A DNA stretch of 59,947 nt, filler included, from Dugesia japonica (lineage: Eukaryota): assembly GCA_001938525.1 (NCBI GenBank). It is 5 parts of 5 records of this genome, joined end to end, with 100 filler letters (N's around TTAATTAATTAA, not from the genome) between each part and the next. Parts side by side here need not be neighbours in the genome. Positions count along the whole stretch, not along the records: positions 49,434 to 59,947 come from MQRL01596716.1; 4 more parts are not named here. One strand, 5' to 3'. Within the stretch, counting starts at the first letter, position 1, and every line of letters begins with the position of its first letter. Positions 49,434 to 59,947 of this stretch are shown here, one piece after another. The translations under genes were made by a program, and so were the position numbers. The notes beneath the pieces were generated by a model. It ran no database searches and was not told the DNA's origin. It saw only the letters and a program-made list of their open reading frames with translations.

Positions 49434-49739
49434 CTAACAATAACGATAAGGACAATCATAACTAAGGAGCCTAATTTTTATTAGTAATCATAATGATTAT
49501 AATAATAGCAATAATAATGATAATATTAGTGATGATATTGAATACAATGTTAGTAGTATAAGTGCTTCCAACAGGTATAATAAAGGCTAATAAAACTAAA
49601 TGGGAGCGATAATATTAAGTGAAGATTCTGAATGAAAATGTGCTATAATATAATATGAATAATGAAAGTGAATACCAGACTAGAGTTTATAATATTTGGT
49701 TTCTAAAAACTTATTGAAAGTGGTAATACTAAATGATAA

Positions 49740-50770
49740 ATATTATATAGAAGTCGTAAAAGAATAATTGTAATAATAATAACATGGGCCGTAGTCAAAT
49801 TCTATATCCTAAAGTTTTCATTTTAATAAAATTGAAAATTTTATTATATTTATCATTAATAAAAAAAATCGTTTAACTAAATTTTAATGACACAATTCAT
49901 ACAAATAATAACAGAATAATAATAAATAAAAATATTTCTTACTGCTAAAATAAATAAAAGANTACTACGGGAGCACAAGAATTTGATGAATCGTCGATAG
50001 ATAGATTGAATAAATAAGATCTTGATTTGGAGCTGCTTTGAGAATCTTCTGTGAGAATGGTATGAGATTTCGGAGATAGTGGCTGAAAATTGGATCGAAC
50101 TGTTAAGAATTGCAACGATTTATCGTATATCAAAAACTTAGAAAATTGGAATTAAAATGATATTCTGGAGAGCGAGTATTTATAGTGAATTTCTCGTTGA
50201 TAATTATCACGAAATCTATTGAATTGACAACCGCTTCCTGTCTGGATTTGAGATTCTTCTCGAGTAAGTGTGAAGATTTCTTAATTTGTTTACTGATTAC
50301 TTCTAGATAATTGAAGCCGCAATTTGATGGACTTGAGCTGGCGAATTCCAATTGTCAAAAGATTGACAAATTTGGGAGTTTGGTAATATGATGAAAATAA
50401 TTTCTTTAAAATTTTATTATGGTAATTTCCAGCAAATCTTGAAATTGAAATTTTCTTGTAAGTACAATTTTTTCTGAATTTTGGTTGATTTTCACTTGAG
50501 TTTTTAGATCGCAATCTGAGTTTGATGGGTAATATCAAGTCAAATGACAGGATTTATTAGGTTAAGTTTTGTCTATTTTTGAGCCCTTTTTATAGTAAAT
50601 TTTATTAAGATTTATTTTCCATTGGCTGTTTTTGGTCGAAAATTCATACAATTTTCTCACAATTTGCTACACATTCTGGAAAAATAGGTAGTATTTTTTG
50701 TATAACTTAAATATTTGTGGATTAATTTATTTTCTTTTATAGGATATATTTGGTTTAATTCGCTCTCAGA
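49740..50770 (-). promoter_or_regulatory. Repeated promoter/leader-exon cassette, copy A
   Basis: Minus-strand CCAAT (50621), CTATAAAAAGGG (50584-50595), CTATAAATACTC (50174-50185) and donor GCA|GTAAG (49942); colinear with copy B. Confidence 0.65.
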
Positions 50771-51133
50771 CGGATCCCTCAGACACTCCAAATCTATTCC
50801 AACAATTGAATGACAGTTACTTTTTTATTTGTTTGAATTTTTCAATAAAGTTTTTTATTATTTTGATTTTGTTTTTGTTTTGAACTTGTAGTTTTATTAT
50901 TTATTCTGTTTTATTGGGTTTTTTGATAAACAAATTGGTTGGGTTTAGTTCCAACAGATTACTTCTGGGATTGGTATAATTTGTAACTAATTTCATAACT
51001 CATTTTCTCTGTGTATATGTTTTCGTATTTTATTTGGTTACTGACTACTTTTACTGTTTTTGTATTTTTTGGAATATTTTATTTTTCTGATTTTTTTATA
51101 ATTTACAACTTTTTACACATTCGCTCCACTTTC

Positions 51134-52493
51134 CTACACCACATTCCTTATCTCGATGAATATGCTACCATCTTTTACGAAGTTTGATAGCACCTTTTTG
51201 ATCGATATAAACGTTGGGGATCCTGATCCTAAGTACAATAGGAGATCTCGCATGGTTTGCCTTTATATGTTTCGCTATACCCTTCTGACAATCTGTCATA
51301 TCCTATGGTAATTCTCATACTAAATTTGTTTGACATGGGTCATTTTAACTGGCATTCATATTTTCCTTTCCTGATTATAAAGAAAATACTTAAATGGCTT
51401 CCTTTTCCTAATCCATCTCCATTGGGGTAAATTCTTAAGGACGCGAGATTAACTTCTTTAAATAAATAAAATTGTGAGCTCGTATAATCTGGGCTGGTAT
51501 AACGTCCATATTTTTATTATAATATTGGTGCGTGTTGGTTGCTTCCCATAATTGGCGACGAGCTTCTAATAACGCCGATTCTGTTGAAACTAATAATGAA
51601 TTTAAGGTACCACAATGTTGTTCCCATAATGCCTCTGTTGTAATAATTTCGTATACTGCTTTTCGTATTGCTTTTTTAATTCCAGCATTTGTGGTTTGGT
51701 ATCCTGCATTCGATATCGTTCGACGTTTATTTCTTGTCCTNNNNNNNNNNNNNNNNNNNNNNNNNNNNNNNNNNNNNNNNNNNNNNNNNNNNNNNNNNNN
51801 NNNNNNNNNNNNNNNNNNNNNNNNNNNNNNNNNNNNNNNNNNNNNNNNNNNNNNNNNNNNNNNNNNNNNNNNNNNNNNNNNNNNNNNNNNNNNNNNNNNN
51901 NNNNNNNNNNNNNNNNNNNNNNNNNNNNNNNNNNNNNNNNNNNNNNNNNNNNNNNNNNTATTACTATTTTTATTGGTTCTGAAGTTTGCGATTTTATCTT
52001 CAATCCTTCGTTGTTATTATTCAAGAGTATTCGTTGTTTCTGAAATTTTCGATTAACTAAGGTTCATGGAGGAAATGCTGATCTACCTGCTATCCAAGTA
52101 AGAAAACATCTACCTGTTGTGCCCAATATTTTGTGGCACGACTAGATTCTNNNTTTAAATGTTTCATTCGTTCTTCTATACAATGATGACAAAGTGTTAT
52201 CCAACATTCGTGTGATATTTTCTAGAAGTTTATTATCACATATTGTGCAAGCGCCGTTTTCTTATCTGATTTCGGGATAGTTTGATAATAATTCTAAGTC
52301 TTTTTGATGTTAATTTTTTCTTGTAGAGCTTGGCATACCCTGTACCAGTTTGTCGTAGTCGCCATTTGTCCGTCGAATGGCTATCCGCACTTCAGCTCCA
52401 AAAGTTCGGCTGGGATGGAGCGGGAAAAGATGCTGGTTGGCGAAGTTCTGCGGAGCATTCTCGTCTATATCTAAACGTATCAGATTAAATCAT
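51134..52493 (-). pseudogene. TRAF-like gene (RING - coiled coil - MATH/TRAF-C), no visible coding introns, disrupted
   Basis: RING-like CTICDNKL...HEC...LCHHC; coiled coil MLELKKQYEKQYTKLLQ; MATH SSQFY...[33 protein letters not shown]...GSGSPTFIS...FVKDGSIFIEI; stops and frameshifts; one N gap. Confidence 0.88.
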
Positions 52494-52969
52494 GCTTAAT
52501 CTGGAACTCATTATTCATTAATGAAATATTTGGTGACGATATATTTTGGTGTTGTTGTGGAGCTGATTTATAGTGAACCTATAAATAAGTTATAGTGATA
52601 GTAACAGTATCAGTGCTGCAATCAAGAAATGAATCAATAACACTAAATTTTCTGAATATGCATCATTCTATAAAGTCATCAGTAGGGGTAATTACATCTT
52701 GATTCTACGAATATTAGCAACGTTTCGGTAAAGAATACTAATTAAATGGTAAATTTAATAACTTATAAAAATTGATAGTTTTATGAGTAATATTGATAGA
52801 ATATTACAAGGATAATAAATAATTAACGACAATTATAGTAACTAATAATAACACTAACGACCCTAAAATTCAACTATTTATCATAATGGTAATAGGGATA
52901 AGTGATGATGGTATTCTGGAATAATTATTTAATAATAAGCATTGAGATTATCAAGGATATTAACGATAG

Positions 52970-54060
52970 TTATTATATAGAAGTCGTAATAGAATAATAG
53001 TAGTAATAATAACATGGGTCCAATTCTATATCCTATGATTTTACCATTTTCATTTTAATAAATTGAAATTTTTATTCTATTTTTTATATTTATCATTAAT
53101 CAATAAGTAAAGAAAAAATCATTTTACTAAATTTTTAATGATACAAATCATAATAATTAATAACAAGTAATAATAACAAATAAAAATATTTCTTACTGCT
53201 AAATAAATAAAGAATCACTACGGGTGCACAGGAATTGGTCGATTGACGAGAGATGGATTGAATTGATGGAACTGCTATAGAATTAGAAACGATTGATGAG
53301 AGTGATAGAATTTTCTTGAGGGCTTTTGTGATTGATTTTCACGACTGAGAGATAGTCGAATTTATTCCCAAAAGATATTTCGTAAAATTGTCTATTTGCT
53401 TGCTGTTTGTTACTCTGGAAAAGCGAGTATTTATAGAAAATTTGCCGTCGATAATTCTCGTGGTTGTCTATTGAACTGACAGCCGCTTCTTGTCCTGATC
53501 TGCTGTTCTTCTCGAGTAATTATGTTGAATTCCTAAAAAATTTGATCTGATTTCTTTTAGATAATGAAACCGCAATTTGATGGCCTTCATTTAGAGAATT
53601 CCAACTGTCAAACGATTGTCAATTTTGGGAATCAACGTAGATGGTTAAGATAATTTCTTTAAAAATTTAATGTGTTTTAGAAAGAAATCTAAATCTTAAT
53701 TATTGCTCTGATTGCTCAGAATGAATTGGAAATTTCTTCGCAAGTGAGTTTTTTCTTGAAATTGAAATTGTTTTTGAATATTTGTAGATTTGCTATGATT
53801 AAGTAGATAATAAAAAACGCGGATTGTTGTCTCAAGCTAAACGAGATTCATAAGGGTAAGTTTTGTCTATTTTTTAGGCCCTTTTATAGTAATTTTTTTT
53901 CAAATCGATTTTTNATTGGTTGTTTTTGGTCAAAATTCAGATTGATTTTCGTGTAAATCACTGATTTTCCCAGGTAATTTTATTTATTTATTAATTATTT
54001 TCTCAATTTTGTAATTAATTTTCTTTTTATTTTCAGAATATGTTTGTTTAATCGATTTTA
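52970..54060 (-). promoter_or_regulatory. Repeated promoter/leader-exon cassette, copy B, upstream of the TRAF-like gene
   Basis: Same motif order as copy A (CCAAT 53915, TATA ~53889 and ~53436, donor 53196); candidate acceptor TTCCAG at 52501 lies 7 nt before the ATG at 52493. Confidence 0.65.
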
Positions 54061-54224
54061 GTTGGATTTACCAAGAAATCGTGAATATTTTTAAGGATCG
54101 GTGAGAGATTTTTTCCATTCGTTTTTTTCATTTCTTAATTAACTATTTTAATTTGTCAATTAATTCTGTTAAAATTTCCATTATTTTACTTAGATTTTTA
54201 GATAGAGGTGTTGGGTTGTGTCCC

Positions 54225-54242
54225 AAAAATAATAACAATAAC

Positions 54243-54298
<56 letters not shown>

Positions 54299-54348
54299 NN
54301 NNNNNNNNNNNNNNNNNNNNNNNNNNNNNNNNNNNNNNNNNNNNNNNN

Positions 54349-54412
<64 letters not shown>
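54225..54412. repeat. (AAT)n microsatellite; one of many (also ~1350-1570, 23290-23535, 29470-29590, 30240-30315, 41480-41670)
   Basis: Pure AAT/ATT runs, usually interrupted by N gaps. Confidence 0.95.
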
Positions 54413-54415
<3 letters not shown>

Positions 54416-54959
54416 TAGAGATCATGGGTGACATGGCTAAAAAATTATATAACTCAAAATCCACAACGAGCATTTGTTGCAAATGTCCTGTAGTTCCGTT
54501 GAGGGCAGCCACGGTGACTTTTACCTAGGGTTAGCAAAATCGGTGTTTCTTGTATTAATACATAATATTTCGGCTATACCTTCTTCAGGGACTATTGCTC
54601 TAGTTCCTGAAGAAAGCATAGCAGAAATATTGAACTTTCTATGAAAATCGAAAAACATCATTTTGATCTTTTCAAATGAAAATAAATTTTACTTATTGAA
54701 ATTTGTTTTTCAAAATATTTGAAATATAATGAAATCAGTAATAATTGTAATAATAATAAATAATAATGACCATGATAACTACGATGATGATATTGATAAA
54801 TATTAAAAGTAACAATAGAAATACTAATTGTAATCATGGCAACTATAGCAATAATAAAAAATATAATATCAATAATAAAAAGGATAATATTAACCGTAGG
54901 TGAAATCAATATAGTACAATTTTAAGTACAATAGAAACTATTAAGGTACGGTTATCAAC

Positions 54960-55870
54960 GTTATGAAATCGATTTTCACGACTGAAAGTTGTCGACTATT
55001 TCTTCAAATATGGTGGCAATAATTTGAGACACCAAGAATTAGAAATTTTGATCCTCTGGAGAGTATTTATAGTGGAATATTTTTGGTGTTTGGAGCTATT
55101 AGTTACCAAATTGACACTGTTTTCTGGTAGATTTTGGAAATTTCTTCGAGGAGTCCTTACGTTTTCTAACAATGGCAATTTGAATTGATTATTCAGATTT
55201 TGACATCGATTTCAAACCAATTATTGGTTTTAATAATTATCGATTGAGGAAATAAGTTGAAATGATGACATTTTAAATTTGATATGGGAATGTTTAGAAA
55301 TTCCAACTGTTAACTATAAATCGGATTGATTGGTTTTGTTTTTGAATACGGAGTAAGGATTTTTAAAAAAAATTTATTTTCTAGTTATTGATTTTTATAT
55401 TCTTTTTCAGCACCTGATATTACTGAATGGAATGGTTCGGGATACTCGATTGAAAATAGAGATTCTTCTAAACAATTTTCTAATAAATTTAGCTTATCGG
55501 ATTTAAGTTTTAATTAGGGTATTCGCAAAGTTAAGAGTAATTTTCTAATTTTATCGGACCCTTTTATATTGATTTGTTCCTCTAAGTTCGTTTTTCATTA
55601 GCTGTTCTTGACCATAATCCAATATCATTTCTCACAATTTGTTCTGGATTTTTTGGGAAAAGGTAACTTTTCTATGAAATTTTATTGNNNNNNNNNNNNN
55701 NNNNNNNNNNNNNNNNNNNNNNNNNNNNNNNNNNNNNTAATTTGTTTTTATAGAATATATTTTATTAAATTCGTTCCTTGGTGGATTTATCAAAATAATT
55801 CAAGGACATTCCGACAATTTGATGACATTTTATTTTTATTATTTTTTGATTGTTAAATAAAGATTTTTAT
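54960..55870 (-). promoter_or_regulatory. Divergent third copy (C) of the cassette
   Basis: CTGGAGAGTATTTATAG (55056), AATTCCAACTGT (55299), GGACCCTTTTATA (55556), TTTCTCACAATTTG and the same plus-strand mini-intron. Confidence 0.55.
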
Positions 55871-56469
55871 TATTTGGGTTTTGTTTNTTTTCATTTTGTA
55901 AGTTCATCATTTATTTTGCATTTTGTAGCTTTCTGTTTTGTAATGAACTGGTATAGTTTCATCCCAATAAAAAGAATAATAACCCAATTTAAACAAGAAC
56001 TAATGTTGCAACCAAAGTCGGCCCCGAAAAATGACTAATAACATAAAACATAATCAAAATATCGGAGTAATAATAATACATCCAAAACTTTTTAATGAAC
56101 AAATAATGGTAACAATTCCACAGAATGAACGGCGAAATAATTAAAATAATTACCCAAAAATTATGAATAAACAAGAGCAATTAAATCCCAAAACTGTAAA
56201 ATAAATACAAAGAAAACGCATAATTTGTTGCCAAAAATAGAAATAATTGCAATTCAACCAGCAATTATTTTTTTAAAACACCGAGATAACAAATAATAAT
56301 TATTGTCACACAGAAAAAATAATTACTGCAACTTATTTTTCTAATCAGAAAAATAAGCAACGAAGAAATAATTATTATATGAAGAATAAATAATTAGTAC
56401 CAGTCAAAAATCAAACAATTATTGTCAACTGAATTCGAAATGACAGAGAAAGAAAAATCGTGGGTGGCA

Positions 56470-56600
56470 CAACAAACCAATTAGATTTACATAGCTAATA
56501 AGAAAGGACCAATAGAAATGGATAGAAATGAAATAAGATAAGTTGACCAATCAGAACAGAGATAGGGGAGAGGTAAAAAAATCGCAGCAGCTATATAAGC
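56470..56600 (+). promoter_or_regulatory. Compact Pol II promoter: three CCAAT boxes plus TATA
   Basis: CCAAT near 56478, 56508 and 56547; TATATAAG near 56593; GAG|GTAACC donor near 56813. Confidence 0.55.
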
Positions 56601-57146
56601 AACAGCATTTTAGAAAGAACTAAAGTTTTATCATTAAGTTTTGATACTATTGTCAGTGAAGCAGCTATAAATTCCTATTCATTAGAGATACTAATACGTT
56701 TCATCGGTTCACAGAGGATACAGAAAAACTTCCCCCAATCAATAACAAAATTACAAGTTACGGGCTTACTTATCTTATATTTTGACACTGGTGGATTATG
56801 CTCCACCCACGAGGTAACCTTTTATTATTTAATATTAATATTTATATTGTTAATGTTGTTGGAGTAATGGAATATAAAATAATTTAGTGATAAATTTTTA
56901 TCTTATCAAAAAGAAATAAACTAATTTAAATTACGGTTCAATTCTTGATCAATCTCTTCCTATTAGTTTGGTACTGGATCCTTAATAGACTCTGGTTACT
57001 AACATAATTGATTAACGTTAAAAAATTAAAGGTTTAAATTTAATCTAAATCATTATTAAAGTAAATGATATTCTATTTCAATATGAAGCTAAGTAATACT
57101 TATAAGATATGTGGAAAAAATAAATGCAGTATATGCAGTTTTTCAG

Positions 57147-57380
57147 TTGCGCCAATTATGCAGACGTTTACTTAGAGCGTCGAATGAAAAGGATGAACAT
57201 TTACTAGGGCTTGAGAAACGCTACGACATGTTACGAAGAAAAAATAAAGAGATCTCCGATGTGAGTCATGACCTTAAGTTGTTAAAAGTAACTAGAGACC
57301 GCTTGAATTTGGCTATGAAAGCTGCAACAGAGCAGAGGAAGAAACTGCTAAAATCCTGCAAAAAACTTTGCCCAATATGA
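57147..57380 (+). CDS. Terminal exon of a small orphan coiled-coil protein
   Basis: TTTTTCAG acceptor then LRQLCRRLL...LEKRYDMLRRKNKEI...LKVTRDRLNLAMK; lies downstream of the promoter. Confidence 0.45.
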   Translation: MRQLCRRLLRASNEKDEHLLGLEKRYDMLRRKNKEISDVSHDLKLLKVTRDRLNLAMKAATEQRKKLLKSCKKLCPI

Positions 57381-58268
57381 GGCAAAGGTTCCATGGATCC
57401 CATACGACGTAAACACCGACAATCAATCCGTCTTATTTTTACATCCTCCAACCTCACCGGAACCTATCCTTTCTTGGAATATGGTAGATATTGATAACTG
57501 ACTTGTTGAGTACTATTGGCAAGACCAAGTAGTAATCATAGCATCTTTAGTAAAGTAAATATTTTGAGGCTTAGTGTTATTTTAATTCTTACATTAGTGC
57601 CAGTTAATAGGCCTTAATTAATGTAAAAATGTCTAGTGTTTGAAAATTTAAAGTTGTCCTCAAATAAGTAATTGGATGAAAATTAATAGTCACAAAGTAA
57701 AGAGCAAATCGATTAAGACAATAAGTTTAAAATCAAATTAAGAAATATAGAAAAGCAAAATTTTATCCGCTGATCATTTTGACTATAAATATCGAGATAT
57801 AACTTAGAAAGTAAATTACTATCGTTAGCTCATAATTAATAAGAATAAAAANATAAGCCTAAGATAGATCACTAAGGATATCAATCCATAATGAGAATAA
57901 AATCACAGTATATATAGTTAATCGGTCGTATCATCTACTTGTCTCGCCACATATTAGCACTTAACAGATACCACTCATAACCGCATATCATACCCCTAAG
58001 AACCCAAACCAAAATAATGCGATTTGCGCGGTTTTATGGATGAAGGTCACCGATTCCTTAAGAGTAGCGTGGGAAACTACTACAAAATCTTTTGTTGGAG
58101 TTCCATAAACTCAACATAGCTTGACTATACGTTTATAAGATCCCANNNNNNNNNNNNNNNNNNNNNNNNNNNNNNNNNNNNNNNNNNNNNNNNNNNNNNN
58201 NNNNNNNNNNNNNNNNNNNNNNNNNNNNNNNNNNNNNNNNNNNNNNNNNNNNNNNNNNNNNNNNNNNN

Positions 58269-58515
58269 TTAAGTTGGTGCATAATTAGCGACGAATTTTT
58301 GGCATGTGTTTATTTAACAAAAAAGATAAAAATATGCCCAAACAATTTTTTAATAAATCAATCTGAAGCGTATTAACCATCTACCTCAATAGCTTCTTTC
58401 CACTTGTTTTACACACAGTCGATCCCATGAGAGAAGAAGTTACTAATTTTGTAGGCAATTCAAGATTTGACATTGACCACCAACTCATTCAAATCGTCGT
58501 AAACAGTAATTTTTT
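58269..58515 (-). mobile_element. 3' end of a cecropia-type mariner with its TIR
   Basis: VYDDLNELVVNVKS*IA...FFSHGID...KWKEAIEVDG is a mariner C-terminus; TTAAGTTGGTGCATAA resembles the Hsmar1-type TIR start TTAGGTTGGTGCAAAA. Confidence 0.8.
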
Positions 58516-59947
58516 ACGGCTCAAGGAATATCCGTTGATCTCCCATAATGTCAAGTGAGTCGAGATTTTTGCAGTTAATAAGTTTGATCAGTCGCGATTC
58601 GATTTTGTGAAATCTGTCAAGTAGGATTTATTTTTAGACTGCGACTGTTTGTCATATAAATTTTAAAAACAGGGTTGAGAAGAAATGAATTGTCCAATTA
58701 AGGTTTCCTTGCTCTCTATTGGATTTATAATTTTCTTTGTAATTTAATTACTGATTTTTCTGTATTGAACTTAGTTTTTGATCGTTAGATTTTTTAGATA
58801 TGTTTTGTTTATTTTGGATATTATAACTTGTTTCAGACATATTTCCCGGGTCTTTATATACCATTTCTCAGTGTTAATCGATCTTCAATTCGTAAATTTA
58901 CATGAAATATCGGGATTTTTTTGATTATATGGTTTCGGATTTTTTATGAATTGGCTTNTAAGTATTTTATTTTATTAATTATTTGTTGAATTATTCGAAT
59001 TATTTTCTTTTATTTTCAGATTATGATTCGATAATTTCAATTATTTTTCTCATTCCTATATATTTCTATATTTTTAATTAATAATACATAGATTTATAAA
59101 ATAATTATTTATTTTTCTACAATTTTCTGATTGATAAAAGATAATGAACATGGTTGGGATCCGTCCACACAGCAATAATAACAATAAAATTATAGTTAAG
59201 CATAGAATTATTAAATTATTAAATTTCTTAAAGAATGTCACCATATGTGGTAACAAAACTTATATCAATAATGTAAATAAATGAGCTCATATTAACTGTT
59301 AGGACCTTTGTTATTATTATCTTAGCGCCAATTTATTGATTTCTGATCCAAGTAATTTATTTATTAATTTAGATAGTTTTTCCGATAAATTTGAGGGTAA
59401 TATTTGCTTAATAATTTCTAGTAAACATATTTGAATAACGATTGTAAACGTTTTATTAAATTCATTTGAAGAAGTGTTCATAAAGATATTTTGGTGAAGG
59501 CTTCACTTTTATTTTATCTGAATTTTTGCATTTTATTATTTATGAATATTCGAGTGTATGTACATCTTTTTAAATTAATATTACACTTACGTTTTGTGTT
59601 ATTTTAAAATAAACCAGTCTTGTTTTGCGCTCTAGTGTGAATACATTAGATACACTAGGAGAACATTTTAATCATTTGGCCGGCGATATCGTATTACTTT
59701 TCTGTATGTCAAATAAATTTAAATAAGAACTCTCAAGCTCGGAGCTACCAATTAAAATTACTGAATTACATTTTTGTTATTATAAATATAAAATTATTAT
59801 CTTGATTATTTATAACTATATTTCATTTACATTAATAAAATAATACTTGCAAGTATATTATCATATAAATCAGAAAAAATATTACTTTTAGATTAAATTC
59901 TCACTAAGAATCTAACATTTATTATTTTTATTTTTATTATTATTATT

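Follow-up and report, generated by a model that had tools for sequence, protein, structure and literature searches.

Three old, diverged copies of a non-coding sequence of about 1.3 kb, all running in one direction, lie around a broken TRAF-like gene in Dugesia japonica, and the segments that are best conserved between them include promoter-like motifs on the strand of that gene. Our tentative reading, which we hold as possible rather than established, is that the copies are the 5′ flank of a minus-strand gene, duplicated locally within a TRAF-like cluster. The window analysed is a stretch of 59,947 nucleotides assembled from five parts of GCA_001938525.1; the copies and the gene fall within the 10.5 kb contributed by MQRL01596716.1 (positions 49,434 to 59,947), hereafter the piece (Table 1).

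Table 1. Features of the piece, in coordinates of the whole window
Feature	Position	Strand	Basis and remarks
Repeat copy A	49482-50960	(-), putative, promoter-like reading	blastn self-comparison, pairwise and three-way alignment
Repeat copy B	52736-54232	(-), putative	blastn self-comparison, pairwise and three-way alignment
Repeat copy C, diverged	54951-55975	(-), putative	blastn, three-way alignment; gap 55688-55737 inside
Possible partial copy D, marginal	58840-59190	(-), putative	T-rich; blastn 53977-54094 with 58964-59077, 72%, E 3e-10
TATA1 block, CTATAAATACTC	50174-50185 (A), 53425-53436 (B), 55061-55072 (C)	-	motif scan, alignment
TATA2 block, TATAAAARGG	50585-50594 (A), 53879-53888 (B), 55559-55568 (C)	-	motif scan
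CCAAT	50621-50625 (A), 53915-53919 (B)	-	31 nt upstream of TATA2; A and B only
Donor-like GCA/GTAAG, GCAGTAAG	49938-49945 (A), 53192-53199 (B)	-	A and B only
TRAF-like gene, broken	51146-52493	-	RING-type cysteines, coiled coil, MATH domain
Acceptor-like CAG	52501-52503	-	7 nt before ATG 52491-52493; 5/15 pyrimidines upstream
Proximal TATA, TATAAATC	52565-52572	-	not within the repeat; the TRAF-like ATG is 79 nt downstream
(AAT)n microsatellite	54228-54414	.	adjoins right end of copy B; gap 54299-54348 inside
Near-perfect hairpin, 68 nt	54564-54632	-	between copies C and B; stem about 30 bp

Diverged copies with a shared order

Copies A and B are joined by a single gapped blastn alignment (49482-50868 with 52736-54161; 65% identity over 1493 columns, E 1e-124) and, on the evidence of this alignment, are true paralogues whose starts lie 3230-3254 nt apart. 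Their identity is concentrated in blocks, reaching 91% in the left block that contains the donor-like site, 79% around TATA1 and 82% around TATA2 and CCAAT (z 17-31), and the stretches between these blocks can scarcely be aligned (z 2-3). Copy C has four blocks in common with A and B, in unchanged order, two of them recovered by blastn (50729-50954 with 55740-55967, 70.5%, E 4e-26; 53851-53948 with 55532-55630) and two, the TATA1 block and the AATTCCAACTGT block, by three-way alignment. Three blocks of C score z 5.5-12 in pairwise comparisons, which detected no significant similarity to the donor or left block (z 0.9-1.5). Since the sequences flanking the gap inside C match copy A in the right order, the sequence is continuous there and the length alone is uncertain. 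These alignments confirm that three diverged copies preserve the same order, as the preliminary description had proposed. The partial fourth copy that it placed near 58840-59020 is marginal: a blastn match speaks for copy D, but the comparison with B gives a z of only 3.3 and that of the TATA2 region a z of about 1.

Kinship among the copies is a mosaic, A resembling B at the left and in the middle and C at the right. The left boundary of the repeat is undefined because the left side of copy A is truncated where the piece ends; the right ends of the copies close in ...CA. Read on the plus strand, the unit ends in AATAAAG (A and C), a small hairpin and then AATAATAAC, which is common to B, C and D and in B alone has grown into (AAT)n of at least 45 units; the gap in this microsatellite has (AAT)n on both sides and is non-coding, so that repeat phase across it is meaningless. 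Copy C is missing the left block, as a 5′-truncated copy of a non-LTR retroposon or SINE would be, but its boundaries are indistinct. Examination of coding potential on both strands of the repeat found nothing conserved except short frames, 18 and 28 codons in length, that read MLLLL...

Several of these properties would also be expected if the copies belonged to a family of dispersed non-coding repeats, be it solo-LTR-like or a plus-sense non-autonomous retroposon, with motifs that were the element's own or compositional and unrelated to the neighbouring gene. We consider this explanation, the main rival, somewhat unlikely. It accords with the non-coding nature of the units, with the occurrence of four pieces of one family within 10 kb separated by unrelated sequence, with the plus-strand AATAAAG, small hairpin and AATAATAAC/(AAT)n ends, and with right ends that close as LTR ends would. 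Repeat subfamilies, moreover, commonly show variable internal segments between conserved ones. Set against this, when 79 open stretches of at least 38 residues from the 10.5 kb were compared with Pfam, only MATH was found, and reverse transcriptase, gag, integrase and transposase domains were not. The self-comparison revealed no terminal inverted repeats joining the unit ends, such as would mark a DNA transposon or MITE, and neither a left boundary nor a target-site duplication is definable. All copies share one orientation, and A and B, mosaic and at their overall identity, are too diverged to be the two near-identical LTRs that would enclose gag and pol in a single element. No copy was found in viral or metagenome collections, motif scans giving 0 matches among viral contigs and, among metagenomes, 0 and then 118 matches, all attributable to chance and none with extended similarity. 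Word searches with the MATH piece, a repeat-borne open frame and a 95-residue stretch at 57093-57377 returned no homologue.

Promoter-like motifs and the question of strand

The TATA motifs, the CCAAT of A and B and the donor-like site of A and B occupy the positions, and the minus strand, originally assigned to them. Along that strand CCAAT and TATA2 are distal, TATA1 follows after about 410-500 nt, and a further 240 nt or so leads, in A and B, to the donor-like site. The CTATAAATACTC string, the longest run that is invariant across A, B and C, has three matches where 0.13 are expected, and GCAGTAAG has two where 0.07 are expected, sitting in a 22-nt exact match within the 91% block. Canonical TATA motifs, TATAAATA and TATAAAAR, are kept in all three copies, and CCAAT lies at a promoter-like distance in A and B but is absent from the matching place in C; the combination of a TATA motif with an upstream CCAAT on one strand, kept between copies, is that of an RNA polymerase II core promoter of the TATA/CCAAT type. 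Among three-way windows of 20 nt, the CCAAT block, TATA1, a block at 50736, TATA2 and an AATAAAG block rank as the best five. As these top windows hold both minus-strand TATA motifs and the CCAAT block, decay has not been uniform, and the proposal that conservation is biased towards motifs while spacers drift is upheld. It is plausible from their motif content that the blocks have, or once had, promoter activity. That they flank a gene of the minus strand is favoured by the count of TATAWAWR within the copies, 11 on that strand against one on the plus strand, and by the orientation of the motifs, which is that of the TRAF-like gene.

A T-rich plus strand by itself yields minus-strand TATAAAA strings, however, and in such DNA a minus-strand TATA and a plus-strand pyrimidine tract ending in AG are the same letters, so that motifs alone cannot assign strand or function. 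Splice-like signals, namely T-rich tracts with a final AG and sites resembling GT donors, occur together with AATAAA on the plus strand of the repeat, so that either strand may be the functional one. Each copy could accordingly be read as a small multi-exon non-coding transcription unit of the plus strand, or its 3′ part, with introns of 35-58 nt and a terminal exon extending to AATAAA, a reading that we judge quite improbable. It would account for GT-donor-like and AG-acceptor-like sites that are aligned in A and B, for the AG-ended pyrimidine tract at 50736 and its equivalents, which is kept in all four copies (YAG at 50742, 54036, 55751 and about 59019) and followed by AATAAAG in A and C, and for the seven plus-strand GTRAGT motifs against one on the minus strand; both the conserved tract and the GTRAGT count tell against the flank-duplication reading. 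It is harder to reconcile with the putative exons, which share no conserved open reading frame (single frames, exons unjoined), and with the supposed intron bearing TATA2, which is better conserved than the neighbouring 'exons'. Where TATA2 lies, the plus-strand AG is lost from C and the marginal D but the minus-strand TATA is retained, which also speaks for the flank-duplication reading. Furthermore, the only clear intron in the vicinity (56814 to about 57130) measures about 320 nt, and T-richness makes a pyrimidine tract with AG cheap.

A decayed TRAF-like gene below copy B

Downstream of copy B on the minus strand lies the only recognisable gene, and it can be read only through at least eight breaks (at least three in-frame stops and five frame changes), in addition to which it is interrupted by a 218-nt gap and a 3-N stretch. 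It carries the MATH/TRAF-C domain characteristic of the TRAF family (Pfam PF21355, E 2.7e-5), the match falling under the curated cut-off because the piece of domain is just 57 residues long. In tblastn comparisons it matches the proteins P0151 and P0033 at 50-54% identity (E 1e-23 to 1e-24) as far as the C-terminus, and in these relatives MATH scores 90 bits and zf-TRAF and TRAF3_RING are matched too. In the gene itself Pfam found no zf-TRAF, part of that region being in the gap, and the RING-type C-x2-C and C-H-x2-C strings lie in separate frames rather than in one intact RING or zinc finger. The RING-type cysteines are upstream of the gap (51741-51958) and the coiled coil and MATH domain downstream, all on one strand and correctly ordered, and the first RING cysteine is 250 codons from the start of MATH at nominal gap length as against 249 in P0151. 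Continuity across the gap is therefore likely, although the frame across it is not knowable. An exhaustive search retrieved 346 MATH relatives, the closest single-domain ones being on metagenome or transcriptome contigs. Translation with the ciliate code (table 6) was also tried; it gave no sensible long frames and left the gene broken.

This gene bears directly on the suggestion that the copies form a reusable dual-TATA promoter and leader-exon module of a large mobile element, spliced onto captured intron-less genes. The conserved motifs do share a strand with the TRAF-like gene, A and B have identical donor-like sites, and relatives of the gene are intron-less RING/zf-TRAF/MATH proteins, a feature that fits the flank-duplication reading as well. 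For the proposed splice from 53196 to 52501 there is a CAG 7 nt before the ATG and the donor-like site is fine. A leader exon would, however, also need a good acceptor and an in-frame start, and here the acceptor is weak, with better acceptor-like sites upstream of it, and the open stretch that follows the ATG is in a different frame from it; copy C, moreover, has no donor. Of the different cargo that the model envisaged a single item is visible, as B alone has a recognisable downstream gene, and that is broken and has a proximal TATA of its own; an intact, intron-less relative (L002) similarly has TATAAATA 35 nt upstream of its own ATG. The sequence downstream of copy A falls outside the piece, and copy C is followed by about 500 nt devoid of open reading frames. 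Within the 10.5 kb no mobile-element protein was found among the open stretches and no terminus of such an element was recognised, so that nothing there supports the supposed link. Taken together, we regard the mobile module as highly improbable.

A hairpin between copies C and B

The near-perfect hairpin between C and B has a predicted folding energy of -38.9 kcal/mol on the minus strand (z -7.9), the strand that its G.U pairs favour, and of -33.9 on the plus strand. The predicted fold has the form of a microRNA precursor, that is, a stable hairpin of 60-90 nt; its Rfam matches are far below gathering scores, and membership of a microRNA family is accordingly not shown. A search for known RNA families and tRNAs gave nothing above chance. 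The position of the hairpin raises the idea of a portable minus-strand promoter module, with or without an origin in a mobile element, that was copied upstream of unrelated units, namely the TRAF-like gene (B), the microRNA-like hairpin (C) and the sequence after A. We think this very unlikely. A plus-strand spliced-leader RNA gene was considered and rejected, there being no Rfam match and no supported conserved structure, and the copies being too different (79% identity in the would-be leader).

Origin of the copies

Under the flank-duplication reading, the upstream flank of a minus-strand gene would have been duplicated locally, in tandem or segmentally, in a region with at least one TRAF-like gene. 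Slippage-prone, low-complexity spacers would then have drifted past alignability while core blocks remained recognisable, as the scarcely alignable stretches between the A and B blocks would suggest, and subsequent unequal exchange or gene conversion would have given rise to the A/B/C mosaic. Copy C would be a truncated duplicate, and the TRAF-like gene below B, having its own proximal TATA regardless, would since have decayed. The spacing of A and B (3253 nt) equals one copy plus the gene and its 3′ end; on this reading the duplication unit would have comprised gene and flank. The same reading is weakened by the broken state and proximal TATA of the lone visible downstream gene, and by the best-conserved block (91%), which under the splice model is mostly intron. 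Furthermore, the A-B and C-D intervals show no homology to each other in the blastn self-comparison, and a simple tandem duplication of a gene unit therefore fails to explain C and D.

Most simply, then, the copies either are leftovers of a local duplication of an upstream region or represent a dispersed repeat, and there is no sign of a mobile system for expressing gene cassettes. If the blocks are promoters, the locus illustrates how flanks are copied, truncated and exchanged as a family expands and which of their short elements survive longest, and would help to annotate promoters in an AT-rich genome where few regulatory elements are known; if they belong to a dispersed repeat, they provide an entry for the repeat library. 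Whichever explanation holds, the case is a warning against motif-only reading of T-rich DNA.

Comparison with known systems

Integron cassette arrays resemble the copies only in the notion that a single promoter region can drive whichever gene is placed downstream of it. The piece has no integrase domain and no recombination sites, and whereas integrons combine promoter-less cassettes with a single promoter, each copy here, bearing promoter-like motifs, would bring its own, which is the opposite arrangement. Spliced-leader RNA gene repeats share with the copies a TATA motif, a short conserved segment with a GT donor at its end, kilobase-scale units and, on the plus strand some 105 nt downstream, an AAUUUGG/AAUUUUGG string, but the would-be leader differs by about 20% between copies and C lacks the donor. 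Solo LTRs and LTR-derived promoters are similar in being non-coding units of about 1.3 kb with CCAAT, TATA, AATAAA and a ...CA end in one orientation; in contrast to them, the TATA motifs and AATAAA are on opposite strands here, there is no internal gag or pol, and a primer-binding site or polypurine tract was not identified.

Strong expansion of TRAF/MATH families is known from some animals, planarians among them, and is reported for Schmidtea mediterranea (PMC6109357); it offers a parallel for the flank-duplication reading that is only an analogy. Unlike such families with duplicated 5′ flanks, the piece has one visible gene copy, which is decayed, and no TRAF-like sequence adjoins C or D. 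Like them, it has a TRAF-like RING/MATH gene with intron-less relatives, same-orientation direct repeats spaced by a gene and its flank, promoter motifs on the strand of the gene, and a mosaic kinship that suggests exchange between copies.

A diverged, mosaic repeat

The analysis covered the piece at 49434-59947 alone. A G+C content of about 25%, tracts of (AAT)n, single Ns and four gaps of N mark it as draft sequence from an AT-rich eukaryote, and it is unlike human DNA in appearance. Self-comparison confirms the non-coding repeat within it, and conservation in the repeat favours promoter-like blocks. Copies A and B (see table) form one long gapped alignment, 49482-50868 against 52736-54161, at 65% over 1493 columns (E 1e-124), and repeat families lie 3230-3254 nt from each other. 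Shorter stretches join copy C to A (50729-50954 with 55740-55967, 70.5%, E 4e-26) and to B (53851-53948 with 55532-55630, 71.6%); the C blocks are collinear with A and B, and C also shares the block holding TATA1, one of two minus-strand TATA blocks, and the AATTCCAACTGT block. The flanks of the gap within C both match copy A in the correct order, so the sequence across it is continuous and its length alone uncertain.

Features of the piece 49434-59947 (positions along the whole stretch)
Feature	Position	Strand	Remark
Copy A	49482-50960		
MLLLL... frame in A	49732-49785	minus	ATG-opened, 18 codons
TRAF-like gene	52493-51146	minus	between A and B
N gap	51741-51958		within TRAF-like gene
TATAAATC	52565-52572		79 nt upstream of TRAF-like ATG, outside repeat
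Copy B	52736-54232		
MLLLL... frame in B	52932-53015	minus	ATG-opened, 28 codons
(AAT)n	54228-54414		at least 45 units, begins exactly at end of copy B
N gap	54299-54348		within (AAT)n, repeat seen on either side
Hairpin	54564-54632		68 nt, near-perfect, between C and B
Copy C	54951-55975		
N gap	55688-55737		within copy C
AATAATTAYTG-like motifs	56170-56440		several, upstream of plus-strand promoter-like site
Gene-like region	56500-57500	plus	two CCAAT boxes and GCTATATAAGC, then GT donor at 56814 and intron of about 320 nt
Open stretch	57093-57377	plus	after the intron; continues in another frame
N gap	58147-58268		
Possibly mariner-like stretch	58269-58560		directly after gap
Copy D (proposed, partial)	about 58840-59190		

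Decay of the copies is not uniform. Between A and B, the left block with its donor-like site is 91% alike (z 31), the TATA1 block 79% (z 30) and the block with TATA2 and its upstream CCAAT 82% (z 17), and two spacers are barely alignable (z 2-3). The best five three-way windows of 20 nt fall in the CCAAT block, the TATA1 block (with an invariant run of 12 nt), a block at 50736, the TATA2 block and an AATAAAG block. The preliminary description was thus correct in placing its motifs and in proposing that they outlast their surroundings; part of the unevenness comes from the spacers, whose degenerate GAT(T/A)GA-like or T-rich tracts slip easily. It was also right about three duplicated copies, and the fourth that it proposed, D, proved marginal (z 3.3 and about 1).

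Copy C is similar to A and B at both TATA blocks (z 5.5-8), its right end is most like A (z 12), and its left block has no likeness to either (z about 1). When 50725-50960 was compared with 55738-55975 and 54018-54232, A proved nearest to C at this right end, and it is nearest to B in the left and middle parts. Such mosaic kinship suggests that the copies have exchanged sequence or that the unit is composite. Our best reading, a tentative one, is that the 5' flank of a minus-strand gene in a TRAF-like region was duplicated locally, with exchange among the copies and truncation of one. The main rival, a serious if rather unlikely one, is a dispersed non-coding repeat. In its favour, the copies terminate on the right with ...CA and then AATAATAAC, expanded in B to (AAT)n; this array seems to have grown from the AATAATAAC string, which is also found at the right ends of C and D. 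The phase of the repeat at the gap within the array is meaningless because the microsatellite is non-coding.

Against tying a dispersed repeat to a large mobile element, the 79 open stretches of at least 38 residues in the piece include no mobile-element protein and yield only MATH, and no inverted termini were found in the piece; nothing within it links the copies to such an element. Other copies of the repeat were found neither among the viral contigs nor among the metagenome contigs searched (118 matches to the latter, all chance), and word searches returned no match. Treating A and B as the LTRs of a single element was ruled out, as they are too different and too mosaic.

Strand of the repeat

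On the functional strand of the repeat, sequence signals point both ways. The minus strand is favoured by the distribution of TATAWAWR within the copies (11 on the minus strand, one on the plus), by the TATA2 place in C and D, where the minus-strand TATA is kept and the plus-strand AG lost, by the minus-strand orientation of the sole gene neighbouring the copies, and by base composition, since both recognisable genes of the piece have an A-rich sense strand, as does the minus strand over the right two thirds of the repeat. Part of the TATA signal is itself base composition, because TTTTATAG reads as CTATAAAA on the complementary strand.

The opposite reading, that the repeat is a plus-strand transcription unit, is improbable. 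It is favoured by a T-rich plus strand with more G than C, by seven of the eight GTRAGT sites and all strong AG-ended pyrimidine tracts lying on that strand, and by a YAG-ended tract at 50742 whose equivalents are kept in all four copies, with AATAAAG after it in A and C; the minus-strand TATA at the same place survives in A and C only. The putative plus-strand exons, read one exon and one frame at a time, have no conserved frame. The minus-strand MLLLL... frames of A and B, which fall downstream of the donor-like site within the 91%-identical block, agree over roughly the first 15 codons; they are too short to call as coding.

The TRAF-like gene

The gene below B has 346 relatives by exhaustive search. 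The closest with a single domain, P0151 and P0033 (421-452 residues, RING, zf-TRAF and MATH), are matched at 50-54% identity as far as their C-termini, and the DNA is 74% identical to the P0151 gene over 119 nt. MATH is recognised in a stretch of 57 residues (E 2.7e-5), too short to reach the Pfam cut-off. RING-type cysteines upstream of the gap and coiled coil and MATH downstream lie on one strand, and the first RING cysteine is 250 codons from the start of MATH at the nominal gap length, against 249 in P0151; the gene is likely continuous here, with the frame across the gap unknowable.

The gene is broken: even the most economical reading of its legible parts takes at least three in-frame stops and five frame changes, with the gap left aside. 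Some of these may be draft errors; the in-frame stops favour real decay.

According to the preliminary description, the copies are a reusable promoter and leader exon of a large mobile element, spliced to captured intron-less genes. Such a cassette system is very improbable. The broken gene speaks against it, as does the failure to find element proteins or inverted termini in the piece. The splice proposed from B has an acceptor with pyrimidines at 5 of 15 positions, better acceptor-like sites lying further upstream, and leads to an ATG out of frame with the open stretch behind it. The TATAAATC motif lies close to the TRAF-like ATG, and in L002, the metagenome contig locus with the intact, intron-less P0151 gene, TATAAATA stands at 107-114, 35 nt upstream of the ATG, so genes of this family can do without a distant leader. 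A different cargo is not seen behind each copy: C is followed by about 500 nt without an open frame and with a strong hairpin, and the side downstream of A falls past the end of the piece.

Neighbouring sequence

As RNA, the hairpin between C and B folds at -38.9 kcal/mol (z -7.9) when read from the minus strand, against -33.9 for the plus strand; the G.U pairs thus favour the former. Its microRNA matches in Rfam are all sub-threshold; a microRNA-like precursor and a small palindromic repeat are both possible identities for it. The region 56500-57500 looks like a separate gene from its signals, and searches returned neither a homologue nor a Pfam family for it. The stretch after the last gap, at its start (58269-58300), may resemble the end of a mariner-type transposon, and yields no transposase domain; if real, this end may have cut short the marginal copy D.
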